Counted from the first letter of the stretch, positions 5,801-37,605 are shown. The stretch is DNA of 64,000 bases from Lepidodermella squamata (GCA_047495785.1 JBLDXI010000007.1:310001-374000); one strand, 5' to 3'. Numbers and translations are program-made. Notes: a model not told the origin generated them from the sequence alone.

Positions 5801-8209
5801 CGGCGGCTACACTACAACTGTGCCACCAACTCGACCCCTGCCATCCACCACACCCTTTTATTTCACAACCCCGAGCCGGGCTACGACAACCACGACCCGC
5901 CCAACGACAACGACCACGACAACGACTACAACCACAACAACCACGCCTATCCCTACGACTACAACCACAACGCGACGTGTCATCACTGTAACAACATCGA
6001 GGACCCCATTGCCGAGGACTGCAACGGAACCGTTCACCGTGCCTATTACGGATACTCAACCGCCGTTTTTCACCATCACCACAAGGACAACGCCAACTAC
6101 AACCACGACTTTACCATGGGTTACTGACGACCCTAATAACTGGTTTACTAATACGATCCCGACAGTGACGACGCCGCGGCCGACTACTACTATCCGGTTA
6201 TTGACGACGCCGACCACTACGACTCCTGATCCTTGGGACAACACAGATGATCCTTGGTTTACTATTACAGATACTACGCCGAGACGAATTACTACTACGC
6301 CTCGTAGGATTCCGATTCCGATTACGACTACAATGGAGCCACCAACTGATGAGCCTGAGATACCCTGGTGGCTTACAACTCGTCCGATTACAACTAGGTA
6401 AGTCGAGAGGGAGCTTTTCTTATCAATTCTTACCTTATTTCATCGAATAGACGACTTACAACTGTCACAAGATGGTTTACCCCGAGTACCACGACTACAA
6501 TACCGGCGGATCAACGAACGACGTGGGTCAATATTCAGCAACAAGCTCAAAGCCGTGAGTTTTATAATGAAAATCTCTCGAAATAGGTTGAAAAAATGAT
6601 GTTGCCTTAGGTTGCAATCTTCAACCGGCGATTCCGCGTAATTGTTACCCGCAGCAGATGCGGTTTTTCTATGACTACTTTGGAGGCGTTTGCAAGAGTG
6701 CCATCGGCTGCCCGGATTTGACGACGGGTGAAACGAACAACTTTCAGTCATTGGCCGATTGCAATATTTACTGCTCACAATCGGGTACGCATTACTCTTT
6801 TAAATATATTTTCGCACCTCTGAAAGGTCAAGGGTCAAGATCGCTTCAACTTCAACCTCTTGATGCCCTATACACTAAATTAATACTAAGATAAATTGTG
6901 CGGCCAACTTGCGGCACCCTAAATTTTGACGATTCCAGCTTTAAATTTGGCCAAAAAATGGATTTTCTGAAAGTGATTCTCGATTTTAGAAACAGAATAT
7001 CTTTTAGCGGAACCAAATTTACGGTGAGCTGGAACCTAATTTGCTGGAGCGGAACCAAATTTGCATTTTGCGGAACCAAAGTCGAAATATACCTAGTGTC
7101 ACTGTTTGAATAATTCTACGAATTTTAGGCGAAGGATCATTTCTCAATTGAACACCCTACCTTATGGAGAATTTTGCGCTGAATTTACTGGTGTTTTTTC
7201 GAATTATTGTGGTCAATCTTCACCCGCAAGAATTATCCGAAAAGTGATTTCAGGCCACTAGAAAATTCCAAAAAATTTGGTTCCGCTCACCGTAAATTTG
7301 GTTCCGGTAAAAGGAAGACCCTTTTAGAAATTAGTGATTTTTCCAACATGAAAAAGAAAATTCCTAGATAACTCGGGGTTCCAAGTGGCTAAAATGAAAA
7401 AATCTTATGGCCATATCATTAACGTCGTTAAATAGTCGGATCTAAGCTTGTTCACCTTAGCTTTAAGGTGGCAGCAAAAGCGGCAAGTAAAACAGCTTAG
7501 TTTTTGCCTTTCACTCACGTGAAAACTACATGCAAACGCCCCTTTTACTGCCACCTTAAAGCTAATCTAAAAAGAAGAAAATCTAAAGAAGAAAATCTAA
7601 AGGAAAAAATGGAAAACCCCTAAAATTGAATATAGCGTTTGAATTTCGTGCTTCGGGTTTAGCTATAGCCACCGGTAAATAGGCCTAATAAAGAGATTTT
7701 TCAAGAAACTTGGTAATTCGAGTTTCGACAATAAGGACGCTTTTTGTACACATTTTTTAGCTGTAATTGAGGAGAAAAATTACTGCTAATTTCTGAAATT
7801 GAGCTATAAATCTAAGGAAATCTAAAGAAATTCTAAAGAAATGGCTCCAGTTTAGGGTTCGTTCGTATGGCTTGCCTGTGGCCATCGTAATTCGTTCAGG
7901 AAATTTCATCGTTGGAAAATGCAATCATTATCCTCATACGTTCACTTTTTAGACTTGACTCCTTTTTCAGAAGCTCGAGCCTCCGAGTGCTTCTTGTCTC
8001 CATCGGCGGCGCTGGTCTGCCCTGTGCCGACTACGCGCTACTACTACAGCATATCGTCGGGCGTTTGCGCGCCTTTCCTGGGCTGCGCCGCAACGGCCGG
8101 CTCGGCGAACAACTTCGCAACGTACAGCGACTGCGCGACCCGCTGCCGCGTTGTCAACCGCCAGCCCGGCATTGTCATCGAGCAGACGACGTTCTTTGCC
8201 AGGAAGTAG
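2813..8209 (+). CDS. G2: multi-exon secreted protein; signal peptide, 3x domain X, long Thr/Pro mucin-like stalk, 2 variant Kunitz domains
   Basis: ATG 2813 MLGPASSSLRLAVVVAGFVLAHLSAPALA; exon 1 2813-2900, intron 2901-2952. NAGLQIF..MPCSG, ESGLQ|IF..VPCAG and EAGLSVF..VPCSG motifs; Thr tract ~5810-6560; Kunitz exons ~6611-6784 and ~7953-8209; stop TAG 8207-8209. Confidence 0.85.
7001..7323. mobile_element. MITE/foldback-like dispersed repeat, copy 1 (in G2 intron)
   Basis: Left CTTTTAGCGGAACCAAATTTACGGTGAGC is the near reverse complement of GCTCACCGTAAATTTGGTTCCGGTAAAAG (ending 7313); second copy at 26856-27107. Confidence 0.75.
7467..7555. mobile_element. Very short TIR element flanked by TTAA (Kolobok-like MITE; class tentative)
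   Basis: TTAA|GGTGGCAGCAAAAG ... CTTTTACTGCCACC|TTAA; the palindromy extends into the flanks (7457-7565). Confidence 0.55.
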
Positions 8210-8516
8210 CCGCGCGCAACACGGCTACACGCAACATACCCGTGCAAATCTCGCTAACAGCTTTTTATAGCAAATTTTTAAAAATGTCTCTCTCTCTCAC
8301 GTTCTCGCTCCTGCTGCTTGTTACAAAAAGACTTGTATCAATGTTTTCGTGTTTCCGCTGTTTGCTCGTAAAAAGCTGAACTGCTAACAAACGTCCGGAT
8401 GATGATATCATGTGTTTGCATCATGAAATGCGATGAGTGTTTATTTTTCATAAAATAATAAAAAATATTACAAAAAAGACGCCTTAATTTTTTCGTCCGA
8501 AACTCGAATTCGCAGC

Positions 8517-11162
8517 ATGAAGAATAGGCAGATAATGGCGATTGTTTCTCTCGTCGCCATTTTCCGAAGATGTCTCGCAGGTAGCATACGGTTTCCTCTG
8601 ATGATGTAGTTCGCATAGATTTGAAAACAGATTCGAATTTATGTGCGGCTGGCAGCCAACTTCAAATACCCGAAGAGGAAGAATTTTACGAACAATCGAA
8701 TTCGAGGTTCCCATCTGCCGAAGCCGGACTTCAAGTTGGCAATAATTATCAATTAAAATTTCGATAATTTAACTCATTTTACAGATTTTCACAAACTACA
8801 GAATAAACTGCTCAGGTTAGTAAAATCTTCGAGGAAAAATAGATCGGATTTTTTTGTTGATAGGAATTATCACGAAATGGCGACTGATGGCTCGAACTGC
8901 CAACATAACTGGTCTCCACCTAGCTGTTTTCAGATTCCTAAGCCCTCAATTTTTGAAGCTAGTCGGCGAAGTTTACTATAAGAAACACCCATCTGGAATT
9001 ATCGATAACACCCCTAGTTGGATTACTTTGACTTTAGACCAGCCTCTTCGAGTTGAGGCTGGTGACGTAATCGGTAAGAATTTTACGACTTCCACTGGGC
9101 ATTAATTTCAGCTTTAATTTTGGGAAGGAATGTTTTACGATAAATTTACGACCCCTTCAAGTGTGATAGCTGTTGCCTCGCGAGTTTCCGGCGCCAATAA
9201 CACGATCGCCCTTCTGCTAGACAAAAGCCACTTCAAGAACAACAGTTTGAATTTGGATGATGGCCAAAAATGCTTATATTTTTTACTCTGAATTATTTTA
9301 GAAATGGTTTCCATTGTTGGAATACCGTTAATCGCCCGAACCCCAGCTCTGGGCTTTGTTCTCGAGGGTGACATGGATTCGTTTATAACTTCAGCCCCAG
9401 GGCATTGCGTAGCGTCTCGAAATGTGGCTGTTCCCGAGGGCTTCGTCGAAGATGACCCGGGGAACTATCCATTCGTCGAAGCAGGACTGCAAGCAAGCTA
9501 TTAAATTCGCCAATCTGATGTCTATATTGTGACTTATTTTTTTCAGATTTTCGCAAACTTGCAAATTCCTTGCACTGGGTTTTTGAAGGAGTGGCGTTTT
9601 GTAGTTCGCCCACCGGTGATTTTCGGCCTTCATCTGGCTGTTTTTCGTAAACGCGGGTACAACGCCTTTGATCTTATCGGCGAGACTTTGATCGACTCGC
9701 GACTAAGCAACATTACAGATTTCACTTACGGTAACTGGCTATCATTCGTGGCAGATCCGCCGATAGCTGTGATGAAAGGCGATTTTATCGGCATTTACTA
9801 CGACCAACTTAAAACGCGGGACGTTGTCCTAACTATTCCTAGTCGCTTGCCAAATAGGCAAAACTTCGAACGCGGGAAAGCTTTCGTCTTCCTTGCTGAT
9901 AGGAAATCCTTACTCAATTATACAGGTTATTCCTATGTCTTGATATTTGAATTAATCTTTCATAAGAAATTTTAGCTTTAAATGCTGCGACCAGCTTGTC
10001 CCTCGAAAGGATTCCGGCTTTATCGGCGGTTATAGGCGATCTTAAGACCCCGGTTACAACAACCTTGGGGCCTCAAATCTGCGAATCGAATGCCACTGTC
10101 CCAAATGATTTTAGAGACGGCCTACCATCGTCGAACCTTTTTGACCTCTACGAAGCTGGTTTACAGGTCTAAAAATCACACAAATTTCCAAATTTATCGG
10201 TTAATTTTATGCGCAGGTATTCAACTACATGAGAATTCCTTGTAGTGGTGAGATAGGATTTTTGTTATTTCATCGCCTTAATTTCGGATTTTATCATCCA
10301 GGAAAAATAGTTGAATGGAATTTTGTGAGCAAATCTCGCGTTGTTTATGGTCTTCACCTGGCCGTTTTTCGTAAAAATGAATTCGACACAACATTGGAGT
10401 TGGTTGGTGAAACAGCGCTGAGCTACAACCCAAGTGAAGCTGATCCTAATACAAAGGCCTGGATTACGCTGGCAGCGGATCCGCCGATCAACGTTAGGGC
10501 AGGGGATTACATTGGCATGTATTACGATAAATTGGAGACCAGCGACGAATTTCTTACCATACCAAGCACGAGTTACAACCAAGTGCTTTCTGACGGCAAA
10601 AAAGCTACTACCTACGTATGGCTAACAGATAAAACTAGCTTGGATAGAAGTAAGGAATAGCAATTTAATTTTCAAATATTTTTCAAAAATTTATTTAATT
10701 TATTTTAGATTTTGTAGACACCCTAGATGCTATTCTTGTAACTCGAGCTGTAGCCCTAGCTGCGGTTGTTAGGGCAAAAGACAGCCAATCAGACATTTTA
10801 GTCTCGGCCGAAGAGGATGACATAATTCCTATAAGGACATATCCAAGCCATACAGAACCACATATTACGACCCGAATGACTACGTCAGTCGCGATTGTTA
10901 CTCTAGGTGGCGTAGCTGCTCCTAAAACCGATCGTAATTTTTCATGAATTAAAGTTCCTGGCTATATAGGTTTTATTTTCGTTTAGGATGTAGCACAAGG
11001 AGACCAAAGGCCTTATCGAAGTGTGACTCGTGGCGGTTCAAATTTTCCTACGATCCTCGCATGAATGCTTGCCGTTCGTTTTGGAGCTGTGAAACGTCAG
11101 ATTTCGGCTTCTCAACCCGCTCGGAATGCCTGAAAACTTGCGCCGAGGCTTCACGCTTCTAG
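8517..11162 (+). CDS. G3: secreted protein; 3x domain X, short linker, 1 degenerate Kunitz-like domain
   Basis: MKNRQIMAIVSLVAIFRRCLA (exon 8517-8580). Three EAGLQ/GLHLAVFR/GD.IG sets; 31-nt mini-exons; GC-AG intron 9493-9546; last exon CSTRRPKALSKCDSWRFKFSYDPRMNACRSFWSC..GFSTRSECLKTC*; AATAAA 11267-11272. Confidence 0.85.
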
Positions 11163-19039: not shown

Positions 19040-20971
19040 ACAAAAATTACATAATCGTTTACTAAACGCTAATTAAAATAACTGCTGCCTCATTTATATT
19101 ATAGATTTGTGATCAAATAAAAATTTGACGACATTAATGATGTTGATGGAATTGTATCGAAACCGCACACTTTCGGAAAATGTTTTGGAAAATTTAGAAA
19201 TTGGAAAATGTAACCCTTTGCCTTAGAAATTCAGCTTATCAATTTTTATAGCATTTTTCAGCCAAAATGTCGAAAACCTAGGGGGAAGGCCTAATTATTT
19301 TCAGAAAACTTCTGAATTCTAGTGGGTACGCGCCCCCCCCCCCCCACAGTCTACCTGATCATCGATTGGCAAAATAATAAGTTTCGAACTTTAGATTTCT
19401 TAGGCTTGTGTGCAGATTTCCTTCCCTTTCGCAGATTCTTTAAAAATTGGCTTTCCAGCTCGCCCGCGAGCATGAGGACATTTTATTCTCGGCAAATAAT
19501 GAACCCATGCATTTAGGGCAGCCGGCCGATCACCTAGACCTTGGCCAGACACATGGATCAGCGAGCAATCTGAACTACCTTGCAATCGGGCGCAGTCTTA
19601 AAATCGCAGAAATCCGCCACGCTGCATGCTTCTAAAACCCCAACCCCGCATCCGATCCGGGATTAAAACCAGGCGCATGTCCACGGTTTTATTTTGTTCA
19701 GGGAAGGAAATTAGGCAGACTATTAGAATTCACCCAAACCTCGCGGAAACTGGGTTTCTTTCGATCTTGCTACTAAAGGTAGTCAGTAAATAGACAGATA
19801 ATGATGTCATGGATAATGATGGTAAGTAAGCACATATCATTATCCCAACATTGTCCCAACACAGTCGCAACACAGTCCAAGAGCGAAGCCCGGGTTATCC
19901 GACCAGCCTCGAACCGTGGAAAGCTCTGGGCCTGGTTTGGATTGCCTGTATGACAGATTTAAATAGGCTTTTCCAATTGACAGTTTGTAAGAAAATATTC
20001 AAAAAAAACTAGGGGAGAGCGTACAATGTCTTTTTGACCTTATCGTTGTTGTTTAAAAATGCACTTATCAGCACGAGTTATTTGTCTTTAGGAATTAATT
20101 AATGACGTATATCTCGACATCACCTACTAAATTAGGAACTTTTCTCTCAATTTATAACACGATGTCGATATAAATGAAAGAAAATTTACTAATTTAGTAA
20201 TTGACGTCGGAATAAATACGTGCAAATAAATTATTTCTAATGACAAATTACTCGTGAATTTGCATAATTTTTTAAATGCGTAAAACAAAAAATCTCAAGT
20301 CGAGCAAATGATGGTTATTTACTGTGTTATTTGTGCTTAGCAAACATACCTTGTTGACAAAAATTAATTTCTTCGGCAGCCTCTTATACCGCGAGGATAT
20401 CAAAGACTATAGTCGGCATTGGAAATAAGGTTAACTATTTTAATTTACTGCTCAACGCGCCGGTCTGCATCTGGTACATAGAGATATAGACAGAGTTGAA
20501 GAAGTACTTCTACTCTATTCTTAATTTTCGCGTTCCATTGTGCGAAAAGCAAACAAAAGTTATCCTGGATATGTTCCCTAGCAAAAGCGCTATATTATGC
20601 GCAATGTCATTCGATTGAAAAACTGGTTTCATTACGTTTAATACCTTTAGTTTAGCTTAACACGTTTTAGACGAATTTTTATATAAAAACGGAACAATGC
20701 TCTTTTTATTCCTTCCATTTTGCAAACGCTGCGCAATGGCAAATGGGGGCTCTTCATGCTCGAATATCTCCTCATTGTGCCCTATCTCTACTCATTAAAT
20801 TCTGGGATTAAATACATAAGCCTAGGGATCATTTCTATCTTAAATGAGCATTTAATATTTTTGTTCGCCTCATATTTTTTATTTTTTGCTTTGCCATGCA
20901 ACATGTGACAGTTATTAGCGAAACCATTCGATAATATGAAATTTCGAATGGGGTGGGATGGGCGCGGAGCG

Positions 20972-22203
20972 ATGAGTCATTTAGGATTGGCGATTCTCAT
21001 TTTTGGTCTCATTTTCACTACGGCATTGCCAACGAAAACCCGGAGAAATCGCAGGATTATGCTCAAGCAGGCTGTTGTCAGCGACGACAAATGCCAGTCT
21101 GTGCCAGTAAAAATTCCTGACTCAATTAACCCATCAGATCCTTTTCCCTACGTCGAATCTGGCCTGCAAATTTTTTTACACCTCCAAGTACCCTGCGACG
21201 GTAAAAATTGGCAAAACGAACTACACTTAAACTAATTGTTTTGATTGAAGGAACGATAACTCGATGGATTGTTTATCCGAAAGCTGGATTCATCATCCAG
21301 CTGCATCTGGCCGTTTTCCGCCAAACCGGCGCGACGACATATCAGCAAGTCGGGGAGACTTTTATCGACGTTTTAAAAACCAATTCGCCAGATGATGCTC
21401 TCGGTGAAACAGTCGTAAATACTAGCCCGATAGCGGTGAAACGCGGCGATTATCTGGGTTAGAAAATTTCAAGTTTTTTATTGATAAATTGATTTTTTCC
21501 GATTAACAGCCATGTATTACGGAAATTTGAAACGAAAAATTGGCCCGTGCGCGGCGATACCGAGTAAGAAATACTTTTCACCGAGACCGGATGTCCCTCT
21601 TCCAACGCTAATTTGGTTCAAAGACGCATTCGACCTAATGAATGAAGCCTGTTGGTGGACAAAAATTATTAAAAATTATTGGCTAATTTTCCGGTTTTTC
21701 CTAGATACTGTTGACACAGTTTACGCGTCGAGGGAATACAGGATTCCAGCATTTATTGCGATAATCGATAATATTGTCACCAGTACAACGACGGTGACAG
21801 GTATAGATTGACATCAAATTTAGCCAAGTCTGGATCCTTTTCAATGAATATTCCTAAGCCTGAATTCTCTTGAATTTCAATAGTTCCGACCACGCCATCA
21901 ACAACTCCAACCACGACTACAACAACCACGACACGGGCACCTCCTGTCCCCAGCTCCACCACAACGCAATCCAAGATAACAAGCTCGGCCAAACCAATAA
22001 GCACAAAGCCACCGGTCGTTCCAAATTACGTATCTACACAGAAAGATTACGGTCCTATTGCGTTTGTCAATGGCCAAGGCTATTTCATTACCCCTCAAAT
22101 ACCGAAACTCCAGTTGCGGTATGTTCCCTATCGGCGCGACCCCTTCGAATTTGCCCCAAAATCAGGCTACCCGCCACCAAAAGAGGCACGTATATTTTGG
22201 TGA
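20972..22203 (+). CDS. G7: secreted protein; basic propeptide-like segment, 1x domain X, Thr-rich tail
   Basis: MSHLGLAILIFGLIFTTALP-TKTRRNRR (upstream in-frame ATG 20936 also possible); FPYVESGLQIFLHLQVPCDG; last exon ends ..PKEARIFW* (TGA 22201-22203). Confidence 0.8.
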
Positions 22204-23328
22204 CTTGACGATGATATTATGAAGAAGCAAGCATATTATTTTTGTATAATAAAACTATCGCAAATCAGTCAATATGTAGGTAATTAAACCCCGGTAAAAC
22301 TAAGTGCGTCACTGAATTTTTTTTAAAATTCCTATTACCGAGCAAACTACCGAGTCGTTTTATAATTCGGCCAACAGTGCAAACCCGGCACTTCAGGGAC
22401 TTTCGGAATTTTCAGCATTGCCAATTATGAATCGATCAACATATCGACTTCTCCAGCTCGATTGATTTTATCGTTTTTTCAAAGCTGTCAGGTGGCCCCA
22501 AACGGCCTATGATTTTAAAGGCTATTTAAGCTTTTTCTTGTATTCTCGCAGATGACTGGAGCAAGGTAAGTAACTACTGTAACGCAGTCCTATTTCGGAC
22601 AGGGTAATTTCGGACACTTTTGGCTTTGAGCGTGAGTTTCTCCATAACCCTGGTAGATAGAAATATACCGTTCAAAATGCAGGAGATAGCCCAGAGTCTT
22701 GTCTTTCAACCTCACTTCAAATGAAACATGAGAAACGGATTTGTTTAAGAAGAATGGTTGCACTTCTTCGCAGGTGAGCGCCGAGGTAAAAAATTGCTAA
22801 CTTTTTCAAATGGCAGTATTTTTTGCCGGATAAAAGCGCAAAAGAAAGAGCGCATCGAATTCAGTTAGGCTGGCGTGTTTGGAACACATTTATACCAGAC
22901 ATTTTGCCTGAAATTCCGCCAGAAAAACCGATATACCCCGGCTTATTTCGGACAGCCTCCAACTACATAGAATTCAATCGACCTTGACAGCTTTTAAACT
23001 TTAATAATATTTTAGTGAGAATAGCAATACTAGATAAAGAGAAATAAATACTAGATTTCGCAGTCTATCGAATGAGCTCAGGTATACCTTGTAGGCTCGC
23101 ATGATTAATTTTCTAGCATTTGTAGAAAAGAGCCATTTTTGGAGATTTTCGGCAAATTTGCCATTCTTCTGCCGCGATTGGCTCATTCGATTGACCAATC
23201 AACGTGGGCAATAGAAATAGACTTTCAAGTGGTTCCATAATGATCCCGTTTGTCACAGAGCGGAAAGAAACAGCGGTTGAAAACCGACAAATAAAAGCCA
23301 GAGTAAAACCTACTAACACAGCTGGCTG

Positions 23329-23591
23329 ATACACGAATCCCAAGTGGCCAATTGCCCGCCCACTGCCTTCATGCTGACAGTAAATAAGTTGCTGCATCAT
23401 GTCATCATGCTGCAACATGAACTAAATTGATGTAACTTGGAGCATTGATGCCTGCTAATTACCCTATTTTGTTATAGGCACACACTATCACGATGATTAA
23501 CCTAACGACTGTCGCAGTTTTAGCGCTGGTTCCATGCCTTGTGGCTGGTGAGTTGCTTTACAAAATAAATCGCAATGAATTGCAACATTGA
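23329..23591 (+). repeat. Near-identical duplicate of G9 upstream region + exon 1 + start of intron 1 (27966-28257)
   Basis: ATACACGAATCCCAAGTGGCCAATTG...GCAATGAATTGCAACATTGA at both loci; the G9 copy has a short extra internal segment. Confidence 0.95.
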
Positions 23592-24670
23592 TAATCAAGA
23601 TCCGCTATCTGATTATTACGAGGCTGATACGGCTGATACGACAATGTCTCCATCGAGCGGGTTTCATGAAAGCCGCTCGACGCAGATATTGTCCGTTTTT
23701 CCAGTTGAAATGGATATTGCACGCCAGGCGAAGGGCACTGTACTTCAAACTCCTCAGGCAACATTTGACCTGACAGCAGAAACAAATGAGTGTGCTTTCA
23801 ATGGCACATACGTTCCACCTGGTTATGAAATAGACATGCTTCAAAGTGTTTATGCTTCAAAGTATAAAATCGCGGAGGCGGGGCTTCAAATCTTTCGCGG
23901 CTTAGTCGTTAGTTGCGATGGTCAGTTTTTTAAATCTTCGATCGTCTAGTACCGTTTATACCATTTTAGGAATCCTCACGCAATGGCAGGTTATTTCTAA
24001 CAGTTATTTTTCTGTTTACCTAAGCTTTATTCCGTTTATTATCGGGTCAAACTTTTAAGATCAATTGATCATCGGGCTGCATTTGGCAGTTTTCCGAGAG
24101 CGGCACAATCAGTCGCTGGCCTTCGATATTGTCGGCGAATCTTACATTAATAACGTCACTTTGCCCGCGCACAGATTTCTGAATAGATTTCGGCTTTCCT
24201 ACAGCATTGCACCGCCACTCGCAGTTCAAAAAGGCGATCTTGTAGGTAGAAGACGCGAAAAAAAACCGAATTTTAACCACTACAACCAAGTTTTTTCTAG
24301 GCTATTATTACGACAACATTCAAACGCCATACAATTTGTTGACAATAGCTAGTGATATTTTGCCTGAGGAGACGATTCACCATCCTGACACTCCAGTGAC
24401 GTATGTTTTGCTCAAAGACTTCTCGTCAATTGACCGGAACGGTTCGGTTTTAAAACCCCGAAGATTCAATTTTTAAATTACTAAATTTTAGACCCCATCG
24501 ATGCATCCTTCGCATCCGTTCAATATCGAAAGCCTAGTCTTGCAGCTATTATCAGGCCGATAAGCCGAACAACAGGTGACCTATTCAGGGTATTATTGCC
24601 TCCTATTAACCAGATTGGCCTGACTTCAGCATTCGCTTTATTCGCACTATTTCATGAAGTAACTTACTGA
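23493..24670 (+). CDS. G8: chimeric array member (G9-derived promoter/signal exon + G11-derived domain X exons); 3' end uncertain, may be a young gene or pseudogene
   Basis: Exon 1 MINLTTVAVLALVPCLVA differs from G9 exon 1 by one nucleotide; the body aligns with G11 including introns; frame is open to TGA 24668-24670; alternatively spliced at ~24575 to an exon at ~25068-25290. Confidence 0.65.
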
Positions 24671-25323
24671 CACTAAGCCACAAAATTTATACATAGCACT
24701 ATCTAATATTCCCAAACATTATCTAAACCAAAGAAGCCGGGCCTAACTTAGCTAGGCTTTTAACTAAAGTGAGCTGCATAGTTTTGCTGCAAATCTTAAA
24801 AATCAATTTTCTGGGGTGGAATATGGGCTGAGATGGCGATGAAACACGACGGTTGGCCACTAGATACCGAAGGCGGAAAAGTCGGAGTGCACGATCAGGG
24901 CTATTCACAATATTTTAGGACTCCGCTTCCGATTTCTGAAAAGAAGGGGCAGTCCGAGTAAGAGTAGGATCTAAACTCGTCGAGTTGGGAAGGCGACCTT
25001 GGCCGACGACGCCATCCTATGGAAATAGGACTGACGTCAACAGCGTTTGTGTTCACATTTTTATAGGACCTAAATATCGTAATTATTTACGCGGCGCCTG
25101 CTCTCCACTGCCAGCTCTACAGCCTCCCTCGACAAATCAGTACCCTGTTGATCAGCAGACCCATGCTCTTCAAGCCCTCATTGACCTCGTCGGCGTCCTT
25201 GCCTTTGCCCGCGTCGAAGCTATTGACGACGTGTTTGAGAAGGAACTTCACTTTTACAAACTCCATGACATGCAGCCTCAATGTGGCTGAGTACCCTAAG
25301 TTCGTTACGACATTCTGCGGTAA

Positions 25324-25880
25324 CTTCCCTATCGCCGCGGCCCCTTCGAATTTGCAAAAGAGGCACGTCTATTTTGGTGACTTGACGATGCTATTATGAA
25401 GAAGCAGGCATATTATTTTTGTATAATAAAACTATCGCAGATCAGTCAATATTAGGTTGTTAAATCCTCGTAAAACTAAGTGCGTCACTGAATTTTGGTA
25501 AACAAGTTAAACAAGTTAAACAAGTACATATATTTTTGTGTAATAAAACAATCGCAAATCACTGTTGCTACATAATTTCCCGCAAAACTGAGCACGCGAC
25601 CGACTTTTTTAAAGTACCAAGCAAATCAAGTCATCAAGTCGGTTGATGACTCGACCAACTGTGCAAAAACGGCAAAACCGAGTTTTTACTCGTTTGAGCA
25701 CTACTTTGAAGCCATTCAAGAGTTTACTTTATTTGAGGATATTGTCATATGATTGATCAAACAATCAATTTCTCAAGGTCGATTGATTTCATAATTTTTT
25801 CACAACTTCCCAGAAGAGTCTTGACCTACGATTTTAAGCTATTTCACTTTTTCTCTCGCATATGACCTGGGCAAAATAAC
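25324..25880 (+). repeat. Duplicate of the G7 3' coding end, 3' UTR and downstream flank (~22124-22575)
   Basis: TTCCCTATCG..CCCCTTCGAATTTGC[deletion]AAAAGAGGCACGT.TATTTTGGTGACTTGACGATG..TAAAACTAAGTGCGTCACTGAATTTT is shared; weaker similarity continues to ~25880. Confidence 0.85.
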
Positions 25881-25953
25881 TAGACATAATAACTAAATTT
25901 AGATATACCAAAATCCACAACTAGCTTATATGCTATCCCGAATGGAGGTAGAT

Positions 25954-26824
25954 GACGAGAAACCGCAGATTGTAACTACAAAGTCTTATCGATTCAGGGT
26001 TATGTGGGGACACTATACTATAGCTTGACTCCACCAAAGCTTTTGAATATCCAGCAAGATTCCGCATTCCTCACCTCAGATTACCCTACAAAATGCGGAC
26101 AGCGCATAATAAAATAACGTTAGAATTTATTGCATGTGAGGGATTATTAATTGATGCAATAAAAACTCAATTTTTTCAGGCGAACCTTTTTCGGAATTAG
26201 CATTTTTCACTGGTTAGCTTCAAAGCCCAATTTCTCAGCAACCCTAATGACTATTAACCAGGGCTTCTCAACACCTAACCCTTGGCAGGGTTAGGTGTTG
26301 AGAAGCCCTGGTTAATAGTCATTCAGGGTTGCTCGAGAAATTGGGCTTTGAAGCTAGTGGTGGAAAAGATGCTCGAAATTCCGAAATGATGCGTCTAAAC
26401 TATAAAATGTCATCCAATCAACTTCCGCTCTTTCTCAAATTTCTTCAACCTTCCCATGAACAGGGCTCTTATCCGCATTTTCAGCCGGTTTTAAGTCAAA
26501 TAAAGTAGGACGCGAGCGAAGCGAGCTTTAGCTAACGCTATTTTTGAAGCTTTTTTTCTGGAAATGTGCCCAAAAATAAACCAAATATTCGCAATTTTCA
26601 AGTTTAATGAAAATAATCAGGCGACCCCCGCGACACCCCAGCTGACTCGGCGACCCACGGAAAAAGGGGCCGCGACCCCTTAACGAGGACCCTTCCGGGG
26701 TCGCGACCCCCAGTTTGGGAAACGCATAGTTCGACTCCTCCTTAATTGATCTTGAAAGCAACGTCAAAATCTCAAGATGTTAAAATTTTTGCTAAATTCA
26801 ACTTTTCCGTTGCTATAACGGTCA
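25954..26824 (+). repeat. Dispersed repeat (second copy 41821-42236), here interrupted by an insertion at ~26259-26728
   Basis: Shared blocks GCAAGATTCC, GGATTATTAATTGATGCAATAA, TTTCTCAGCAACCCT.ATG.CTAT, and after the insertion GTTC.ACTCCTC.TT.ATTGATCTTGAAAGC. Confidence 0.75.
26259..26728. mobile_element. hAT(Charlie)-like non-autonomous element, rearranged at its left end
   Basis: Left end CAGGGCTTCTCAAC; right end has repeated GCGACCC motifs and GGGGTCGCGACCCCCAGTTTGGGAAACGC, resembling hAT-Charlie termini; absent from the homologous repeat at ~42110. No target-site duplication confirmed. Confidence 0.5.
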
Positions 26825-26855
26825 TATCATAAAACCAGGATATTATAATATCTTA

Positions 26856-27107
26856 TTTTAGCGGAACCAAATATACGGTGAGCGGAACCAAAGTCGAAAT
26901 ATGCAAGAGTCTATGAATTTTAGGCGAAACTAGCGTTCTAAATTGAACACTATGGCTTATAGAGAATGTTACGCTGAAATTACTGATGATTTTTTTTTAA
27001 TTATTGTGGTCAATCTTGACCCGCAAGAAATATCCGAAAAATGATTTTAGGTAACTATATATTCGATCCGTTACTGTAAATTCGGTTCCGTTAAAAGGAA
27101 GACCCTT
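26856..27107. mobile_element. MITE/foldback-like dispersed repeat, copy 2
   Basis: TTTTAGCGGAACCAAATATACGGTGAGCGGAACCAAAGTCGAAATAT...AATTATTGTGGTCAATCTT...GGTTCCGTTAAAAGGAAGACCCTT, collinear with 7001-7323. Confidence 0.75.
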
Positions 27108-28158
27108 ATAAAACGAAAGGAGGGAGATTCAGATCTTCGTCTTTCTATTTCACCTTGATATTCCACCATCTCTAAACTCAGTAGCTACACCTCGCCTTAA
27201 CCTGCTCTCACCTTATTACATTTTATTCACGCGAGTTTTTGGCTTTAATGAAGAAAGAAGTGGAGAATTTGATATAACGTATAACGGAATTTCCTGTTTA
27301 AAAAATCGTCACCGCTACAGTTGTTGTAGCCATCGAAATTACACGCAAGCAATTTGTATGAAAACATGACGACATCAAGGAACCTCGTATCGTGCCAACA
27401 GCGGCAGGGATTTGTAAGCCGGCGACACAAAATTAGCGGGCGGAGTCAAACCCCTGGCTAATACGCATGTCGATCATTAGTTAGGGCGATGCGTGCATAT
27501 AATCTGCGCCTAAATGGTTGTTATTATTTAACCTCCGAATAAATGACAGCGAAATGAAGAAAGCGCGCGCGGGGTTTACAAAACCTCCGCTTTTAAATTG
27601 CCGGCGACGACACGAGCTGCACGCGTCCCCTGGACGCACCTCTCTAGCAGAACGATAAGCGGAGAAAATAAAAGTAAAAAGCTCGAGTTTTTTCACACCG
27701 GCAGAAAAACCTTCCTCTCGTTAGCATAATTTATTGCGTGATTATGCCTTAATAATAATATCTATATAATAATATCCAGCATCGGAGCGGGGAGCAAGCA
27801 GGGAAGCGTTAACACGAGTCTTCATTTATAATCTTAACAGCAATTTTAAGGTGGTTATACGTGTTAATAAAACAGTGCTCCACACTACTAGTACTTCCAT
27901 GCGAATTCATGCATCACACTGTCATCACGTCGTGATAATACAACAACTCCCCATTAAACAGGCTTATACACGAATCCCAAGTGGCCAATTGCCTGCCCAC
28001 TGCCTTCATGCACAGCTGACTGCTGACCTTCATGCTGACAGCTAGTAAAGCTAGTTGCTGCATCATGTCATCATGCTGCAACATGAACTAAATTGATGTA
28101 ACTTGGAGCATTGATGCCTGCTAATTACCCTATTTTGTTATAGGCACACACTATCACG

Positions 28159-29971
28159 ATGATTAACCTAACGGCTGTCGCAGTTTTAGCGCTGGTTCCA
28201 TGCCTTGTGGCTGGTGAGTTGCTTTACAAAATAAATCGCAATGAATTGCAACATTGAACCTTTCAACCAGCTCAACAACCGTCAAATCAGTGCTCGAATT
28301 CGAGAGTTTTCGTGCCGCCAGACGCGAATGACACAGCGCCGTATCCGTTCCAAGAATCCGGTCTCCAGATTTTCACGAATCTCATTATACCCTGTGATGG
28401 TAACAAAATTTCACCAGCAATTTCCCAAGTTTTATCTCATTCCCAATAACAGGAAGCCTTATTGGCTGGAGCTTCCTGCCTGGTCAGCAGTACATACTTC
28501 AGCTTCACTTGGCCGTTTTTAGGCAACGCGCTGATAAAATGTACCAACAAGTTGGCGAGACTTACATTGATCTTAAACGGGGAAATACAAGTGAAGTCTC
28601 AACTTTCCCTGCGATACCTACAATCCCAGTTATGGCCGGGGACGTCATTGGTTGGCTTTATTAAAAAAATTCCGTTCTCATTTTTTTAGAAACTTTCTAG
28701 GGATGTACTACGACAACTTTGCGAGCTTGAATGGTCTTTTAACAATCAAAAGCAACAAATTGCCTAATAATGGCGCGAATCTGCCGACCTATGTTCACCT
28801 GTGGGATCGACCCCTCCTAGCGGCCCGGAACTGTTTGTTACCTAATTTCACAAAATTTCGATTTATTATTTTTGAATTTTTCTAGATTCGGTTGATGTGG
28901 CTACTGCTTCAAAAGAGTCAGTTTTAGGTCGATTTTACATCCAGTTTTACGAGACGATTTTTTAGTTACCGAATTCCCGCTCTTGTTGCGGTTGTTGAGC
29001 CGTCTTTTGCTCCCCCGATCGATATTATACCCACCCTGCCCGCTGTTACTACCTCAACGCGTCGTCCAACGCCCGTCCGCACAAGACCTATGACGACGAC
29101 TCCAGAGCCGACTACGACAACTGAGACTGCGACTACGACGAGGCGAATTATGTCGCGCCGAACAACGACTCGACGGGTGACAACAACAACACGCAGGCAA
29201 ACCAGCACCAAGAGCGTCACACCTGTTCAGGGTATAATTGCCTCAGATTACCCGGATTGGCCTGATATTACTGACTTCACCATTCGCTTTATCGGAACCA
29301 CAAAAGCCAGCACTTCCACGGTTACGAACATGCCGCCTGTTATCTCTTCTGCATCAAGTTCGATCTTTAATACTAAGTTGAGATTTTTTGTAATTTTTCA
29401 AAATTTATTATAGGGTGCATGCAAGATCCAACGTCAGCGCTATTTTGCACCGCACGACAAGTTCGCGCGTTTTACGATTCTGGAACGGGAGTTTGCCGCG
29501 AGTACTTCGGCTGTCCGACATCTGTAGATCAAGGCAACAATTTCAAATCGGCAGCTGAATGCCGAAGCGTATGTACCGGCGAGCAGCAGACTAATGACGA
29601 CGGTTTGTCCCGTTTTTCTATAATTAAGGAGGATTTGTTCAATATTTTTGTTGTCAATAGTTTGCAAGCGTACTCCAACTGCGTTGGAAGTTTGCTTTGA
29701 GAAATCTATTAGGTACTTCTACAATCCGACGAAGCAAGCTTGCATGTCGTTTTACGGCTGCTCGCTCGGAGGCCTGCCAGGCAATAATTTCGACTCATTG
29801 CAGCAGTGCAATCGGTGCAAAGGTCAAGTTGTATTGACCCCGGTCCAAGGCAGTAACGCGCCGCTACCCGTGCCGGCCTCGTCGTCGCAAATTTTTTACC
29901 AGCCAGCCCCGGCTAACTCGATAGTCTACCAAGCACCAGTCGGCCAGAACAATTTTATATTGAGCCAATAA
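28159..29971 (+). CDS. G9: secreted protein; 1x domain X, Thr/Arg-rich stalk, 2 variant Kunitz domains
   Basis: MINLTAVAVLALVPCLVA|; YPFQESGLQIFTNLIIPCDG; LHLAVFR; DYRIPAL; Kunitz CREYFGC and CMSFYGC. Confidence 0.85.
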
Positions 29972-32983: not shown

Positions 32984-34058
32984 ATGCTGCATTATATCCT
33001 CTAGCAACAAAACCCAACCTCTTCGATGCTCGGTAGATTTAGTATTTTTTCGACCTTTTCGTAAAGTCAGAAACTTTCTTTTTGGATGATAAAATATTAT
33101 AATGTTTGTCAGTTTTATATTGCTTCAAAAGAAATAAAATAAACAATTGACAGAACTCGTTCAAGGCTTTCTTATTTTAACATATCTAAGGGACGATTAC
33201 CATAGCTTTCCGGTTAATCTCTCGCTTTTTAGTTTATAGTTGATGATCTAAATGAAAGTGGTTGACTCTCGTCGTTAACTCAATAATTTGCATATAAAGC
33301 GAGGTGATCATAAATGCTAATAAGCAAGCGCGTTAAATAAATACCGCGCGCTTCAAGTTTTTTGCGCCACGCAAGGTTTATAGGGAAGGTCAACAACGTT
33401 GTTTAGCCGCCGTGCTTTCGCGCGCAGTTTTTAATGAATTGGTTTTTAATGATATTAGAACGACTTTGAGACAACCTGTTTGCGCTAACGACGGCAAAAT
33501 GTTTTTGCGTGGCTATTTATAATAAGGAAAACCGATATTGAAGTTAATAAGCGTAGCATGAAATGACGACTTCGGTCCCTCACTTATTCTTTACCGTGCC
33601 GTAGAATGAGAAAACAATAAACACTATGTTTTTTTGTGAAATTCTCTGATTGTTTGTTGCTGCGGCGGTCCGTTTTCTTGAATCTGGCTTAACGATGACG
33701 AGCAGGAGAAATCCGGCCACGAGACAACAGTTCGCACTACCGTGGAGTTGTCAACCCACTGTCAATTTCAACAAGACCGCCGCGTGTCGTCTTTTTCTTC
33801 GCTGCTTTTGTTCGCGCACGCGGAAACTGACTGCGCGCGCGCGCCGAGCGAGACACGGAGCGCGCATAATCCAACGCGCTTTTCTTAGACCGCAGCAGCA
33901 CGCGCGCGCGCTGATTTCGACTGTGTCATTATCTTAATGCGCCATGCGCTGCAACAATGCAACGCGCTCGAATTGTTGTTTTTTTTTGCGATATATTGCT
34001 TTTCATTGACGTGTGTTTCGTCGAAATGCTCGCATAGTAGGTCTTTATTGCCTTTAGA

Positions 34059-35795
34059 ATGTTACATTCATTAGTGGCTGCATCCGCCCTAATTCTGTTA
34101 TCGACATACCAGGCGAAAGGTATACTTCGAACTCCTTATATTCCTGGCAATAATCTGACCGATTTTTTCCGAATTATTCAACAGCAGCGACAGATGAGTG
34201 TCCGCTCAATGGCACATACGTTCCAGCTGGTTATGAAATAGACATGTTGTCAGAGTTTAGCTACGTCGAGGCGGGGCTTCAAATCTTTCGCGGTTTAGTC
34301 GTTAGTTGCGACGGTCAGTTTTTTCGAAATACTCGATCTTCCAGTAACTTTTTTTTATCATTTTAGGAATCCTCGCGCAATGGCGGTTTATTCCTAGAAG
34401 TTCTTTTTCCTATTAAAGCTTTATTTCGTTTTTTATCGAGTTGAATTTTTAAGATCGAATGATCATCGGGCTGCATTTGGCAGTTTTCCGAGAGCGGCAC
34501 AATCAGTCGCTGACCTTCGATATTGTCGGCGAAACTTACATTAACAGCGTCACTTTGCCGGAAGACGCGCCGGGAAATTGGATTTTCTACCCCATTTCAT
34601 CGCCACTCGCAGTTCAAAAAGGCGATCTTTTAGGTAAAAAAACCCCCGAAAAATACTAATTAATTGCTATATTATATCAATTTTTTTATAGGCTATTATT
34701 ACGACGCAATTCAAACTCCAGTCGACTTATTGACAATAGCAAATGACCTAATTCCTTACCCGACGATTAACACTCCAGTGACTTATGTTTTGCTCAAAGA
34801 CTTCTCGTCAAATGTCCGGAAATGTTCGGTTTTCAAGCCCCGAATTTCCCATTTCTAATTTTCTAAATTTTGTAGATCCTATCGATGTATCCTCCGCATC
34901 CGTTCAGTATCGAAATCCTGCCCTTACGGCTATTATCAGCCCAAGAATGTCCGTACAGAATATTGAACCGGTCAAGACTACAAAGCGACGTTTATCTCGC
35001 AAATTTTCTTCACCTACAACCCCGACTACAGAGCCACCGACAACTACCACGGCTGCGATTCCAGAGTTACCACAAGCTGAAGTATACGTGAATACAGCTC
35101 TAGAGCAGCCAGTGCAAAGCATGCCGTTTTTATTCCCCAACGAAGCCGTTCAAATGCCAGTAACTGCCCCGCCGGTGGAGGAATTGGCGAATAACCACGT
35201 TGAACTGGCTGATGTAGCCTATGGCGCGTATAAAATAAGCGGAGATATGCCGTTTGTTCGGCCTGATGCTATCCCGACTAGAAAGTTCACTACAACATCT
35301 TGGCGAACTCCTATCCTACTCTCAATCCATTATAGTAATAATTTTGATTATGGAACTTTTTTCTCTTAATTTTCTTCGAATTTTACAGGGTGTCTAGGAG
35401 CTGTAAGTAGCGAAGAGGCGTGTTACTTCAAGAATACGCGGTTTTATTTCGATTACGACACCGCCTCATGCCAGCAACGCTTAGGGTGTCCACTACCTGA
35501 AGCTGAGCAAAGTTACTACAACAACTTTGTCAGTTACGAGCAATGCGTCAGAATTTGCCTACCAGCCCAGCCTATCACGCTGCCGCCATCAATCGACAGC
35601 TACCAAGACCAGGCAGCGTTCAGTTATTACAAAAATAATCAACAAGCGGATCAATCTCAGGCGCCTGTTAAGACTGTTACGAATAATAATAACGCGAAGA
35701 AGACCCATGTGATCCAATCAAGGCAGCAACAGGTGTTCGACGACAAGATGCCTCTTCAAAAGCTGTTGCCTAGCTTTTTGAGGGGGATTTTTTGA
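34059..35795 (+). CDS. G11: secreted protein; 1x domain X, Thr/Pro stalk, 1 variant Kunitz domain, Q/N-rich tail
   Basis: MLHSLVAASALILLSTYQAK|; VEAGLQIFRGLVVSCDG; last exon CLGAVSSEEACYFKNTRFYFDYDTASCQQRLGC..NNFVSYEQCVRIC..SFLRGIF* (TGA 35793-35795). Confidence 0.85.
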
Positions 35796-36122
35796 AATTT
35801 CCAGCTTCGTCGTGTTGTGAAAACAAAAATCAAATAATATCGGCTCTCTGCATGTATATCGTCATACTATCCGCTGGCGCAATTACTTATCCTGGAAGCT
35901 AAAAGCTTGAACGTTATTTCCGCATCTTATTATATAGATCCCATTGAATTTTTGTTAGAACGCTAAAAAAAGGAAATAAATGAGAATGAAAGGATTTCAA
36001 TAATGACACGGATGTCGAAGCGCAACAACAACCTGTTGTAAACAAAAGCGTGTAATTGACCTGTTTTGTATGTATTAAGACGGTCCTATAAGCAAAATTG
36101 TTTGTTAGTTAATTTTTACGAG

Positions 36123-37605
36123 ATGATGATGAATTTGCTGCTAATAGCACCGGCTTTGATAGCTATCGCTTACGGGCAAGGTATATATTATATAAGATTG
36201 GCAATTATTCCAGCTTAATTTATTTGATCTCAAATAAACAGAAACATGCCCCGTCAACACGCTGGTGCCCTCGACTTACAACATAACAGCAGCAGCGGCT
36301 AAACGATACCCATTTGTCGAGGCTGGTCTTCAAATTTTCCTCGGCCGTCAAATTGAATGCGATGGTGACATTTTTGGAGCATTTTAGCGATTCAATTCAA
36401 AATTTAATTTTTAGGGTGGCTCACTGAGTGGCATTTCATTGCGCAGAATCGTTTCATCTACGAGACTCATTTCGCAGTTTTTCGCGAGGAGGAGCCAGCT
36501 GGCAGTTTGTTTTTCGATGTAATCGGTGAAACCTATGTTGGCAATGCAGTTGCCCTACCAGAACGGGCCAACGGCACTTTTGACTTCTACCCCGCCAGCG
36601 ATCCTATCGCGGTGAAAAAGGGCGATTACCTCGGCATCTACTACGACGATTACGATCAGGGAATCAACTCGGCAACTGTTATCACTGACCGCGTTGATGT
36701 GAACATCCCTGATGGCGCTCCATTGACTTATGTCTTGCTGTTGGACGCTCTTCGAGGAGTAGCAGTTGGGTCTAAGGTCGATGCGACGCTTTACTCTTCG
36801 AACACATTCCGAGACCCGGCGTTGACTGCTCTGATATCGCCTGAAAAACCGACAACCCCTGCGCCAACTACGACAACGACTACAACCGAGCTCCCTCCGC
36901 CTATTCCATCGACTTTATCAACGACTACCTCAACTACAACTGAATTACCACCGCCGATCCCAACGCTGGAACCAGTGACTACGACGACGTCTACAACAAC
37001 CACGACTACAACAAGAAGGACTACTACTACGACTAAGGCATCAACACCAGCAGCGACGACGACTGAGCTTCCAACCGCTGCTACTAGGAGTGGCTTAGTC
37101 CCTGCGAGTAAGTCCTTAAATCTCGAATTCGAAATTTTTTTATTGAACACTTTCAGGATGTCTACTGGACCTGCCGGGTGATAACGCTTGTGTTGTTAAG
37201 CGAGTTCGGTTTTTCTTTCACTTCATAGTCGGCCGTTGCCGGAGTGACTTCGGCTGCCCGCCTACAGCAGCCAACGAGAACAGTTTCGCTTCTCTGGAAG
37301 AATGTGAAAACATTTGCGTCGCTTCGTTCACTGATTTTAGAGAATGGCAGCAGCCACCTGTCATTCCTAACACATTCCCATTCGCTCCCTCTAATGGCTT
37401 CTACGATCCGAACAATCTCAACGCTAGGCTGAGGGCTGAACTGCTATTCGGCACTAGGGAGCAAGCGATTGCCGTACCAGCTAGTAGTATTGTCAACTCG
37501 CCTGGCGGCAAACCGTTGAACTCATTCCCGCGCGAACTGCCTATCAAAGATTCGCAACGCCCTTATCAATCTCGAAAGCACTTGTGCCACGGCCAAAAAT
37601 GTTGA
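36123..37605 (+). CDS. G12: secreted protein; 1x domain X, Thr/Pro stalk, 1 variant Kunitz domain
   Basis: MMMNLLLIAPALIAIAYGQ|; YPFVEAGLQIFLGRQIECDG; Kunitz CLLDLPGDNACVVKRVRFFFHFIVGRCRSDFGC..NSFASLEECENIC; ends LCHGQKC*. Confidence 0.85.

Follow-up and report, generated by a model that had tools for sequence, protein, structure and literature searches.

G8 belongs to a tandem array of related genes for secreted proteins in Lepidodermella squamata and was analysed within a window of 64,000 nucleotides (GCA_047495785.1 JBLDXI010000007.1:310001-374000). The gene consists of three copied parts, a start of G9 type, a body of G11 type and a 3′ flank of G7 type, and the similarity of these parts to G9, G11 and G7 is far above chance by BLAST. 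All three parent genes are still present and each block is single elsewhere in the genome; a search of the 121-Mb assembly revealed no further copy of the G9, G11 or G7 blocks. The locus also holds the relic of a dead G11-type first exon, a G9-like post-stalk relic, a decayed LINE fragment and, upstream, MITE-like repeats, none of them mentioned in the original prediction. The exons, blocks, relics and LINE fragment described below are all on the plus strand. G8 is a DNA-level chimeric (mosaic) duplicate gene with retained introns and compatible phases. As the original prediction had described, it sits between two stretches that each run from a G7 tail to a G9-type 5′ end, with the insert between them.

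The copied parts of G8 and their sources

The G9-type 5′ block (23324-23591) comprises 170 nt of upstream sequence and exon 1 and reaches 43 nt into intron 1. Its partner at 27961-28257 contains the upstream region of G9 itself and exon 1 (28160-28214), and likewise reaches 43 nt into a phase-1 intron of 56 nt. The two match with an E value of 2e-110, differing by 6 substitutions over 268 aligned nucleotides and by indels of 24 and 5 nt; these limits refine the near identity of 23329-23591 and 27966-28257 noticed earlier. Exon 1 of G8 (23494-23548) carries the ATG and an 18-codon signal peptide, ends in phase 1 and is followed by the donor GTGAGT. Within the last 205 nt of the block the genes differ at a single base, 23508, which gives a Thr/Ala exchange in the signal peptide and the one amino-acid difference between the two first exons. 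Homology between G8 and G9 ends at the edges of the block on both sides. Upstream of the ATG only 170 nt are shared, and 847 nt of unique G9 upstream sequence have no counterpart upstream of G8. The interval upstream of the block is occupied by a MITE/SINE-like dispersed repeat of ~452 bp (22575-23026), with more than 40 genome copies up to 93% identical, and by dispersed-repeat fragments (23044-23316), of which one is an element of 146 bp (23044-23190, up to 88%) and the rest are pieces at 23200-23316. The edge of the first of these repeats is the precise point where the G7-tail homology ends, and the fragments end 7 nt short of the G9-type block.

Between the 5′ block and exon 2 we observed a filler (23592-23723), open in frame with exon 2 and with no homolog anywhere in the genome, followed by what is left of a G11-type exon 1 end with its donor and intron 1 (23724-23776). 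The relic was recognised by alignment to G11, the homology starting at 23724 (34109 in G11) and taking in the last 11 nt of G11 exon 1, the donor and intron 1; its local score of 32 compares with a mean of 16.7 and a maximum of 24 in 500 shuffles. The acceptor AG at 23775-23776 is kept, and the donor GT has been destroyed by a 3-nt insertion and a substitution. As the native donor is dead through at least two changes, G8 has probably long been served by a first exon other than its native G11-type one. The original prediction of a chimera between the promoter and signal exon of G9 and the domain exons of G11 was correct as to a DNA-level chimera; the captured segment, however, was not one of bare domain exons, as it also carried the end of a now-dead G11-type exon 1 and intron 1. 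The G11-type body would thus have arrived together with the end of its own first exon.

Two candidate acceptors, 23600 and 23777, are in phase with the present exon 1. The first (23599/23600) is weak and would give an intron of 51 nt, a typical size, and the second, the conserved acceptor of exon 2, would give one of 228 nt, against 49-65 nt in neighbouring introns. Since the first introns of G9 and G11 are both in phase 1, a G9-type exon 1 is able to splice in frame to a G11-type body, as had been proposed, and a G9-type signal exon placed upstream would supply G8 with secretion.

The G11 segment homologous to the body of G8 extends from the exon 1 end through the head-domain end (34105-34942), and BLAST aligns 23773-24558 with 34181-34942 at 78% identity (E 0.0). 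This agrees with the DNA-level alignment, introns included, first reported for ~23772-24556 and ~34180-34940, with the start now moved to 23724. Exon 2 (23777-23920) encodes the start of the head domain with its first Cys and the AGLQIF and CDG motifs; it matches G11 34185-34313 at 85% identity and has a single in-frame indel, of 15 nt. A 33-nt mini-exon of phase 1-1 follows (exon 3a, 23970-24002), and then exon 3b (24060-24245; 85% to G11, one 6-nt in-frame indel), which contains the GLHLAVFR core, a diverged patch and the P..V..GD motif. Exon 4 (24301-24441) carries the YYD and TYVLL motifs and one 9-nt in-frame indel relative to G11. Exon 5 (24492-24671) completes the head domain at 24558, where the G11 homology breaks off abruptly, and continues into a new tail of 37 residues with a hydrophobic end and a TGA at 24669-24671. 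Beyond 34942, G11 itself continues into a stalk and then a Kunitz domain (35421-35558). The head-domain exons of G8 and G11 are all of phase 1-1 and all introns are in phase 1, and G9, G11 and G12 each have a signal exon ending in phase 1. The four internal introns and the intron 1 relic align with G11 at 62-82%; with every internal intron aligned, the template of the copy was DNA and not mRNA, and a processed (retroposed) copy as the origin of the body is ruled out.

Downstream of the head domain lies a G9-like post-stalk relic (24579-24641), 78% identical to 29221-29292, which G8 reads in another frame and which, in the frame of G9, has a stop and a 9-nt deletion. The adjoining sequence (24645-25305) is a decayed, internally deleted fragment of a non-LTR retrotransposon. 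Six pieces of it align collinearly, at 70-92% identity, with 2890-7325 of L017, a full copy; the 3′ end of the fragment is missing. ORF2 of L017 matches Exo_endo_phos and RVT_1, and the fragment is that of a LINE of the APE endonuclease and reverse transcriptase type. Kunitz domains were found in G9, G10 and G11. The stalk and the Kunitz domain (PF00014) are missing from G8, as first noted, and no relic of either was found between 22000 and 28300. The stalk would have been deleted and the G9-like post-stalk piece thrown out of frame, with the LINE fragment at the place where the Kunitz exons are expected.

The 3′ end of G7 (22115-22572) includes its last ~23 codons, the stop (22198-22200), a 3′ UTR with AATAAA at 22248 and the downstream flank, and is the source or homolog of two layers behind G8. 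It matches 25316-25882 with E values of 1.5e-55 and 8e-20, limits close to those of the repeat first described (22124-22575 and 25324-25880). The young layer (25316-25500, K 0.075) contains the last G7 codons, with a stop and a 24-nt deletion, and then 3′ UTR with AATAAA at 25425; an A-rich short tandem repeat comes after it. The old layer (25506-25882, K about 0.44) holds 3′ UTR and flank with AATAAA at 25542, begins 25 nt past the stop of G7 and, in G7 coordinates, shares part of its extent with the young layer. One G7 UTR segment therefore stands twice in tandem, at about 93% and about 70% identity, which requires two or more copying events. Past the G8 stop there is no canonical poly(A) signal for about 750 nt, and the first is AATAAA 25425 in the young layer, so that G8 would take its first poly(A) signal from a copied G7 3′ end, held as an old and a young layer. 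Several dispersed repeats of 260-370 bp (25959-27113), 74-82% identical to many loci and with a self-complementary stretch at 26189-26386, lie further downstream.

The LINE fragment and the G7 tail share one orientation, with the LINE fragment on the 5′ side; the junction falls within both transcripts, and an A-rich repeat follows the young layer. These features would be expected if both were one retrotransposon-made chimera, in which reverse transcription switched from G7 mRNA to LINE RNA. However, the young layer adjoins, in register, an older copy of the same G7 flank, which fits a homology-driven exchange and not random insertion, and the LINE, with its large internal deletions, has diverged much further (70-92%, against 93% for the G7 tail). 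Retro-copying of the young G7 tail is unlikely, and a single chimera of this kind highly so. As the LINE fragment is old by its divergence from extant copies and is itself truncated by the young G7 layer, we place the 3′ truncation of G8 early.

Divergence of the blocks

Divergence varies more than 40-fold among the blocks: K lies between 0.005 and 0.08 in the G9 block, is 0.22 in the G11 block, and takes two values in the G7 tail, 0.075 in the young and about 0.44 in the old layer. For the G9 block as a whole K is 0.023, with the left 63 nt (0.084) more diverged than the right 205 nt (0.005; Fisher p 0.003). The dS between G8 and G11 is also 0.22; of five intron stretches measured, four have a K of ~0.2-0.3 and one has 0.53. 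By Fisher test the G9 block differs from the introns of the G11 block (p 8e-15) and the young from the old G7 layer (p 4e-11). A young, single, recent event would need blocks of one age, near-identical to their sources, and was rejected on this highly significant heterogeneity. The idea that gene birth had been caught in the act does not hold for the body, which split from G11 long ago; the head exons and introns would be a long-separated sister of G11 (dS about 0.2). Nor do a spread of K over 0.005, 0.08, 0.075, 0.22 and ~0.44 and a G7 tail in two stacked layers of different age agree with one duplication around a captured segment.

An older version of a single rearrangement could be considered, in which the interval from the G7 last exon to G9 intron 1 was duplicated, the junction took up templated pieces (G11 body, G9 post-stalk, LINE), and the ends were rejuvenated by later conversion with G7 and G9. 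The order of the blocks is that expected from a tandem duplication ignoring gene boundaries; with the repeats removed the first unit contains the two homologous blocks only. On either side the G11 block breaks off abruptly; like the post-stalk patch (78%) and the old G7 layer (K about 0.44), it is old (K 0.22). We nevertheless regard this explanation as unlikely, since it requires at least three later conversion or copying events for K of 0.005, 0.08 and 0.075. Moreover, the young G7 layer lies beside the old one and not in its place, the 847 nt upstream of G9 are unmatched at G8, and an old layer starting 25 nt past the G7 stop fits an ordinary shared 3′ flank and not an exon-internal breakpoint.

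The tracts of near identity, 205 nt at 99.5% (G9 type) and 181 nt at 93% (young G7 layer), lie beside older or unrelated sequence. It is possible that the 5′ block was very recently copied or was re-homogenised by gene conversion with G9, and conversion may lie behind both young blocks. As the G9-type tract is not enclosed by older homology on both sides, it may instead be a recent separate copy.

The published L. squamata assembly was made from multiple-displacement-amplified DNA, a chimera-forming method (PMC11660948), which raised the question of whether the arrangement is an artefact of assembly or whole-genome amplification. Chimeras made in vitro would equal their sources, but every block of G8 differs from its own, the G11, post-stalk and LINE parts at about 78-82% identity and the G9 block by its substitutions and two indels. 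Six junctions would be needed within 2 kb, and the assembly has 83x HiFi coverage with no chimeric contig detected (PMC11660948). We consider an artefact extremely improbable.

Coding integrity and selection

Exons 2 to 5 of G8 contain 190 codons without a stop and keep all 9 splice dinucleotide pairs (GT/AG), in keeping with the open frame originally predicted. The three exon indels relative to G11 (15, 6 and 9 nt) are all multiples of three, whereas most of the 9 indel events in the introns (about 250 nt) have lengths not divisible by three. A classical decayed pseudogene was rejected, as these exons have no stop, frameshift or lost splice site and decay is limited to the exon 1 and post-stalk relics. 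Open exons and intact splice sites after roughly 10% divergence per lineage argue for long maintenance, and selection may have kept the exons.

Some other measures weigh against this. The dN/dS of G8 against G11 is 0.84, not different from 1, and lineage-specific amino-acid changes number 16 in G8 and 6 in G11 with G12 as outgroup (p 0.05), or 8 and 8 with P0003, so that the G8 protein has changed at close to the neutral rate. Among family-conserved columns (at least 70% conserved in other copies) G8 keeps 21 of 23, a marginal retention (p 0.05-0.3). The head domain of the array, a ~175-aa two-Cys 'PCDG-WRF' module to which no Pfam model matches, retains its hallmark motifs and both cysteines in G8. 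The sharp divergence from G11 of the exon 3b patch was seen as described, and the conserved Trp, present in 20 of 23 aligned copies, is indeed absent from G8. Its loss is not specific to G8, however: G7 and G12 also lack it, which makes the loss a weak sign of decay.

We therefore weighed whether G8 is a dying or dead relic, once full-length and G11-like, that lost its stalk, Kunitz domain and own first exon to deletion, LINE insertion and ectopic exchange, with the frame a leftover and the G9-type exon 1 accidental and inconsequential. The truncation, the dead native exon 1 and donor, the stop in the ancestral frame of the post-stalk relic, the dN/dS, the possible surplus of G8-specific replacements, the scrambled exon 3b patch without its Trp and the long poly(A)-free stretch past the stop would all be explained. 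Against this, five exons have come through about 10% change per lineage undamaged. A neutral simulation with 10-13% change per lineage gave a joint probability for no stop and intact splice sites of 0.006-0.02 with indels uncounted, and well below 0.001 with indels. The in-frame exon indels, retained motifs and cysteines, and head exons intact despite an apparently old 3′ truncation (LINE 70-92%) also speak against a relic, which we hold to be a plausible explanation though not the probable one. Should the last rearrangement date from the time of the 5′ block (K 0.02), little could be concluded about present function from an intact frame.

The predicted product and comparison with known chimeric genes

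Our preferred interpretation, to which we give a probability of roughly 0.55, is that G8 is a real mosaic member of the array, made from DNA through several non-allelic exchanges over a long time. Most likely it is an old mosaic paralog truncated to the head alone, with a predicted product of a signal peptide, a single head domain and a short new tail. Expression of G8 is something we infer. A stronger proposal, which we regard as tentative and rather doubtful, is that selection maintains G8 as a secreted soluble version of the lectin-like head of the array, built from the G9 start, the G11 head and the G7 end, with its promoter-proximal region and signal exon held identical to G9 by ongoing gene conversion. 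If this were true, two different heads, those of G8 and G9, would be expressed under the same control, and nature would have run at this locus an experiment in the shuffling of modules and regulatory regions, in a phylum that has been little studied.

The mosaic of G8 is a tidy case of an already well-known route to new genes. Extracellular modules are shuffled via phase-1 introns, following a rule of phase compatibility for signal peptide and module exons. In G8 and its relatives the signal exons (G9, G11, G12) likewise end in phase 1 and the head exons (G8, G11) are 1-1, so that first-exon swaps keep the frame. Unlike classic exon shuffling, G8 mixes paralogs of one family and has a shorter architecture with no new domain combination. 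Short near-identical tracts at the gene ends beside older or unrelated sequence resemble concerted evolution in tandem arrays; unlike there, the G9-type tract is not flanked on both sides by older homology.

Chimeric genes formed by tandem duplications crossing gene boundaries are known from Drosophila yakuba (Rogers, Shao and Thornton 2017, PMC5460883), where the cases are young and polymorphic and have RNA-seq support. In both cases the 5′ or regulatory end of one gene is set on the body or 3′ end of a neighbour, introns are kept and regulatory elements are shuffled with exons. The body of G8 differs from the D. yakuba chimeras (PMC5460883) in being old, with three parents in one paralog array and layered later exchange. 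In the Drosophila melanogaster subgroup new chimeric genes have arisen by ectopic recombination and are flanked by repeats (Yang et al. 2008, PMC2211543). Unlike in those cases (PMC2211543), no matching pair of repeats flanks the G8 junctions, and the repeats at G8 may be later insertions. The likeness to the melanogaster-subgroup genes (PMC2211543) is that breakpoints of G8 also adjoin repeats, with MITE-like ends at two homology boundaries and the LINE at the 3′ truncation.

Copied blocks of the G8 locus

The array in the window consists of co-oriented genes for secreted proteins, whose products carry an unnamed head domain (a two-cysteine module of ~175 residues) and a Thr-rich stalk; most of the genes also encode Kunitz modules. 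When single exons of G8, the gene under study, and of its neighbour G11 were run against Pfam no family was returned, the sole hits being Kunitz modules in G9 and G10, and the head domain is unrecognised by Pfam. By comparing the window with itself in gapped mode and searching all 121 Mb of the assembly, we found exactly one genomic partner for each copied block in G8. The 5′ block, 23324-23591, corresponds to G9 from its upstream region through exon 1 to 43 nt into intron 1 (27961-28257; E 2e-110). The body, 23773-24558, pairs with G11 at 34181-34942 (E 0.0), and the block at 25316-25882 pairs with the end of G7 at 22115-22572 (E 1.5e-55). These E-values rule out chance for the three repeat relations, which are borne out as originally described, as is the chimeric architecture of G9-, G11- and G7-type blocks. 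G7 itself (20936-22200) encodes a head and stalk without a Kunitz module, and it ends in a unique tail, found elsewhere only in the copy behind G8.

The breakpoints in the locus are abrupt. Homology to G11 begins at 23724, upstream of the exon 2 acceptor, with the last 11 nt of G11 exon 1, the donor and intron 1 (local score 32 versus a shuffle maximum of 24), and the GT of this donor is destroyed in the G8 counterpart. G8 therefore contains two first-exon homologs, a live one of G9 type and a dead one of G11 type. The preceding stretch, 23592-23723, gave no match anywhere in the genome in the assembly search. At the other end G11 homology stops at 24558, and 20 bases further on lies a 63-nt patch (24579-24641) that is 78% identical to the post-stalk segment of G9. 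In the G9 frame the patch contains a stop and a 9-nt deletion; G8 translates it in a different frame, giving a new 37-residue tail. A non-LTR retrotransposon (LINE) has left six collinear pieces at 24645-25305, 70-92% identical to full copies that encode endonuclease and reverse transcriptase, and the fragment has large internal deletions and no 3′ end. One full copy, at 2433-7455 of a 10-kb genomic stretch (L017, G000:C55:871500-881499), is apparently intact; its three ORFs measure 162, 507 and 968 aa, and the domains for endonuclease and reverse transcriptase lie in the longest. This family may still be active, since further contigs have several copies nearly identical to this one. The ORF that follows in that stretch (7628-9697), with an ANF_receptor domain, probably belongs to the host.

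The copied G7 tail is present as two stacked layers. The young layer (25316-25500) holds the last codons of G7 with a stop and a 24-nt deletion, plus UTR, and the old layer (25506-25882), of UTR and flank, lies directly behind it; about 95 nt of G7 UTR therefore occur twice in tandem. The first AATAAA past the G8 stop, at 25425, falls within the young layer. The G7-G8 spacer is packed with MITE-like repeats (22575-23026 and 23044-23316), whose edges coincide exactly with the homology boundaries, and the G8-G9 spacer has different repeats (25959-27113) followed by a unique stretch of 847 nt (27114-27960) that lacks a counterpart upstream of G8. The element of ~452 bp at 22575-23026 belongs to a fairly young MITE/SINE-like family, dispersed in over 40 copies that reach 93% identity to this one. 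A separate element of 146 bp (23044-23190) has dozens of copies, and 26189-26386 in the G8-G9 spacer matches its own reverse complement at 86%, a palindromic, MITE-like structure. The 27114-27960 segment is single-copy in the genome and directly 5′ of the copied block of G9, making it a candidate for the real upstream control region of that gene.

Block divergence and assembly of the locus

We dated the blocks by the Jukes-Cantor divergence, K, between each copy and its partner. The G9-type block has K 0.023 as a whole, with 0.084 in its left 63 nt and 0.005 in its right 205 nt. For the G11 block both K and dS are 0.22, and its introns give about 0.2-0.3 in four of five stretches and 0.53 in the fifth, the intron that separates exon 3b from exon 4. 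The young and old G7 layers have K 0.075 and about 0.44, respectively. These values differ highly significantly (p 0.003, 4e-11 and 8e-15), and a single recent event cannot produce such heterogeneity. G8 had been read as a recent chimera "caught in the act" of formation by one duplication around a captured G11 segment; with block K spread from 0.005 to about 0.44, that description is unsupported. Judged by divergence, the body of G8 is the youngest duplicate of the array, yet old, and its ends were copied or converted later than the body, more than once.

The body was copied as DNA, introns included, and retroposition is rejected on the presence of these introns. At least two layers of exchange with G7 and G9 can be distinguished, and transposable-element material lies at or beside most block boundaries. 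We propose that non-allelic homologous exchange or gene conversion acted between neighbouring array spacers sharing old homology, that at least one non-homologous join at 23591/23592 left the 132 nt of filler, and that the stalk was deleted and the LINE inserted. Alternatively, one ancient tandem duplication with templated insertions could have been blurred afterwards by conversion, a reading to which we give a low but real probability. No residual homology was detected when the two spacers were compared across the repeat insertions. A LINE-made chimera was also considered as the origin of the G7 tail and judged unlikely. The published L. squamata genome was obtained from amplified DNA (122.8 Mb, 157 contigs, 43.3% GC; PMC11660948). 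An artefact of amplification or assembly is nevertheless unlikely, since each block has diverged from its source.

Coding capacity and state of G8

Exon 1 of G8 (23494-23548) comprises the ATG and an 18-codon signal peptide, ends in phase 1 and differs from that of G9 by one amino acid. It is followed by exons 2 (23777-23920), 3a (23970-24002), 3b (24060-24245), 4 (24301-24441) and 5 (24492-24671), the last ending in TGA. The acceptor homologous to that of G11, at 23776/23777, is retained in phase; with an alternative AG in phase at 23599/23600, intron 1 would be 51 nt long, and the frame is open from that AG on. All introns are phase 1, with GT donors and AG acceptors throughout. It is a classic rule that exons of extracellular modules are phase-1 compatible, and the predicted match of first introns was correct, that of G9 (56 nt), G11 (65 nt) and the further neighbour G12 likewise being phase 1. 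In G12 the head from exon 3a to exon 5 lies in a single exon (36383-36860, versus G11 34367-34942); in G8 and G11 that region is interrupted by three phase-1 introns common to both, a case of intron gain or loss within the array. The start codons of G8/G9, G11 and G12 are preceded at 1-17 nt by strong acceptor-like motifs, a T-rich run plus AG (23470-23493, 34046-34058 and 36100-36121). Such motifs could serve in spliced-leader trans-splicing or belong to 5′ UTR introns; if the array genes are trans-spliced, the "promoter" need not sit inside the copied 170 nt 5′ of the G8 ATG.

Exons were searched one by one and joined solely for stop counting and neutral simulation. The 190 G11-homologous codons contain no stop. 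At 10-13% change per lineage, neutral simulation left a stop-free frame in 8-15% of trials and all 18 splice-site bases intact in 8-15%, with a joint probability of 0.006-0.02. Relative to G11, nine indels, most of them of lengths not divisible by three, fall within about 250 nt of intron, and three, all of lengths divisible by three, within 570 nt of exon. Given the age of the LINE fragment, G8 probably lost its 3′ part early, and the head exons are nonetheless intact. At least two changes have disabled the native G11-type donor, which suggests that a different first exon has long been in service. As the frame and splice sites are intact and the exon indels in frame despite this age, we favour G8 as a maintained, truncated "head-only" gene, with a probability of about 55-60%.

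That G8 is a relic is a serious possibility, short of even odds; should the last rearrangement be no older than the 5′ block (K 0.02), integrity tells little about the present state. The dN/dS between G8 and G11 is 0.84, indistinguishable from 1 and hence uninformative in this fast-evolving family. Relative-rate tests gave 17 G8-specific versus 4 G11-specific replacements in a first alignment, and in a four-way alignment 16 versus 6 with G12 as outgroup (p 0.05) and 8 versus 8 with P0003, a foreign head-domain protein; we treat the excess as a weak signal. G8 keeps 21 of 23 family-conserved columns, which is only marginally informative. The Trp noted as lost is indeed absent from G8, but this is weak evidence of decay, since the G7 and G12 heads also lack it.

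G8 in the wider array family

Chimeric duplicates, gene conversion and breakpoints adjacent to transposable elements are well known from Drosophila, nematodes and plants. The value of G8 is therefore as a clear, well-resolved example in a new and understudied phylum; the process itself is not new. Its structure is of the chimera type known from tandem duplications and ectopic recombination (PMC5460883, PMC2211543). The locus records, base by base, the reshuffling of a tandem array of secreted modular proteins, in which gene ends were overwritten repeatedly from neighbours and the phase-1 intron design permits both module exchange and rescue of a truncated copy by a neighbour's signal exon. If G8 is expressed, the head can be freed from stalk and inhibitor modules, and the gene would offer a handle for testing the binding partner of the head.

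A search of the representative library with G8 exon 3b gave three hits, the best at 45% identity and none from the G8 locus. Low complexity accounts for the hit to P0001, a false positive, and the L. squamata genome does not encode P0003. P0003 matches at least 81 places in that genome, mostly on the contig of the window (C7 of G000, about 188-374 kb) and the rest on others, and the head-domain family is much larger than is seen in the window.
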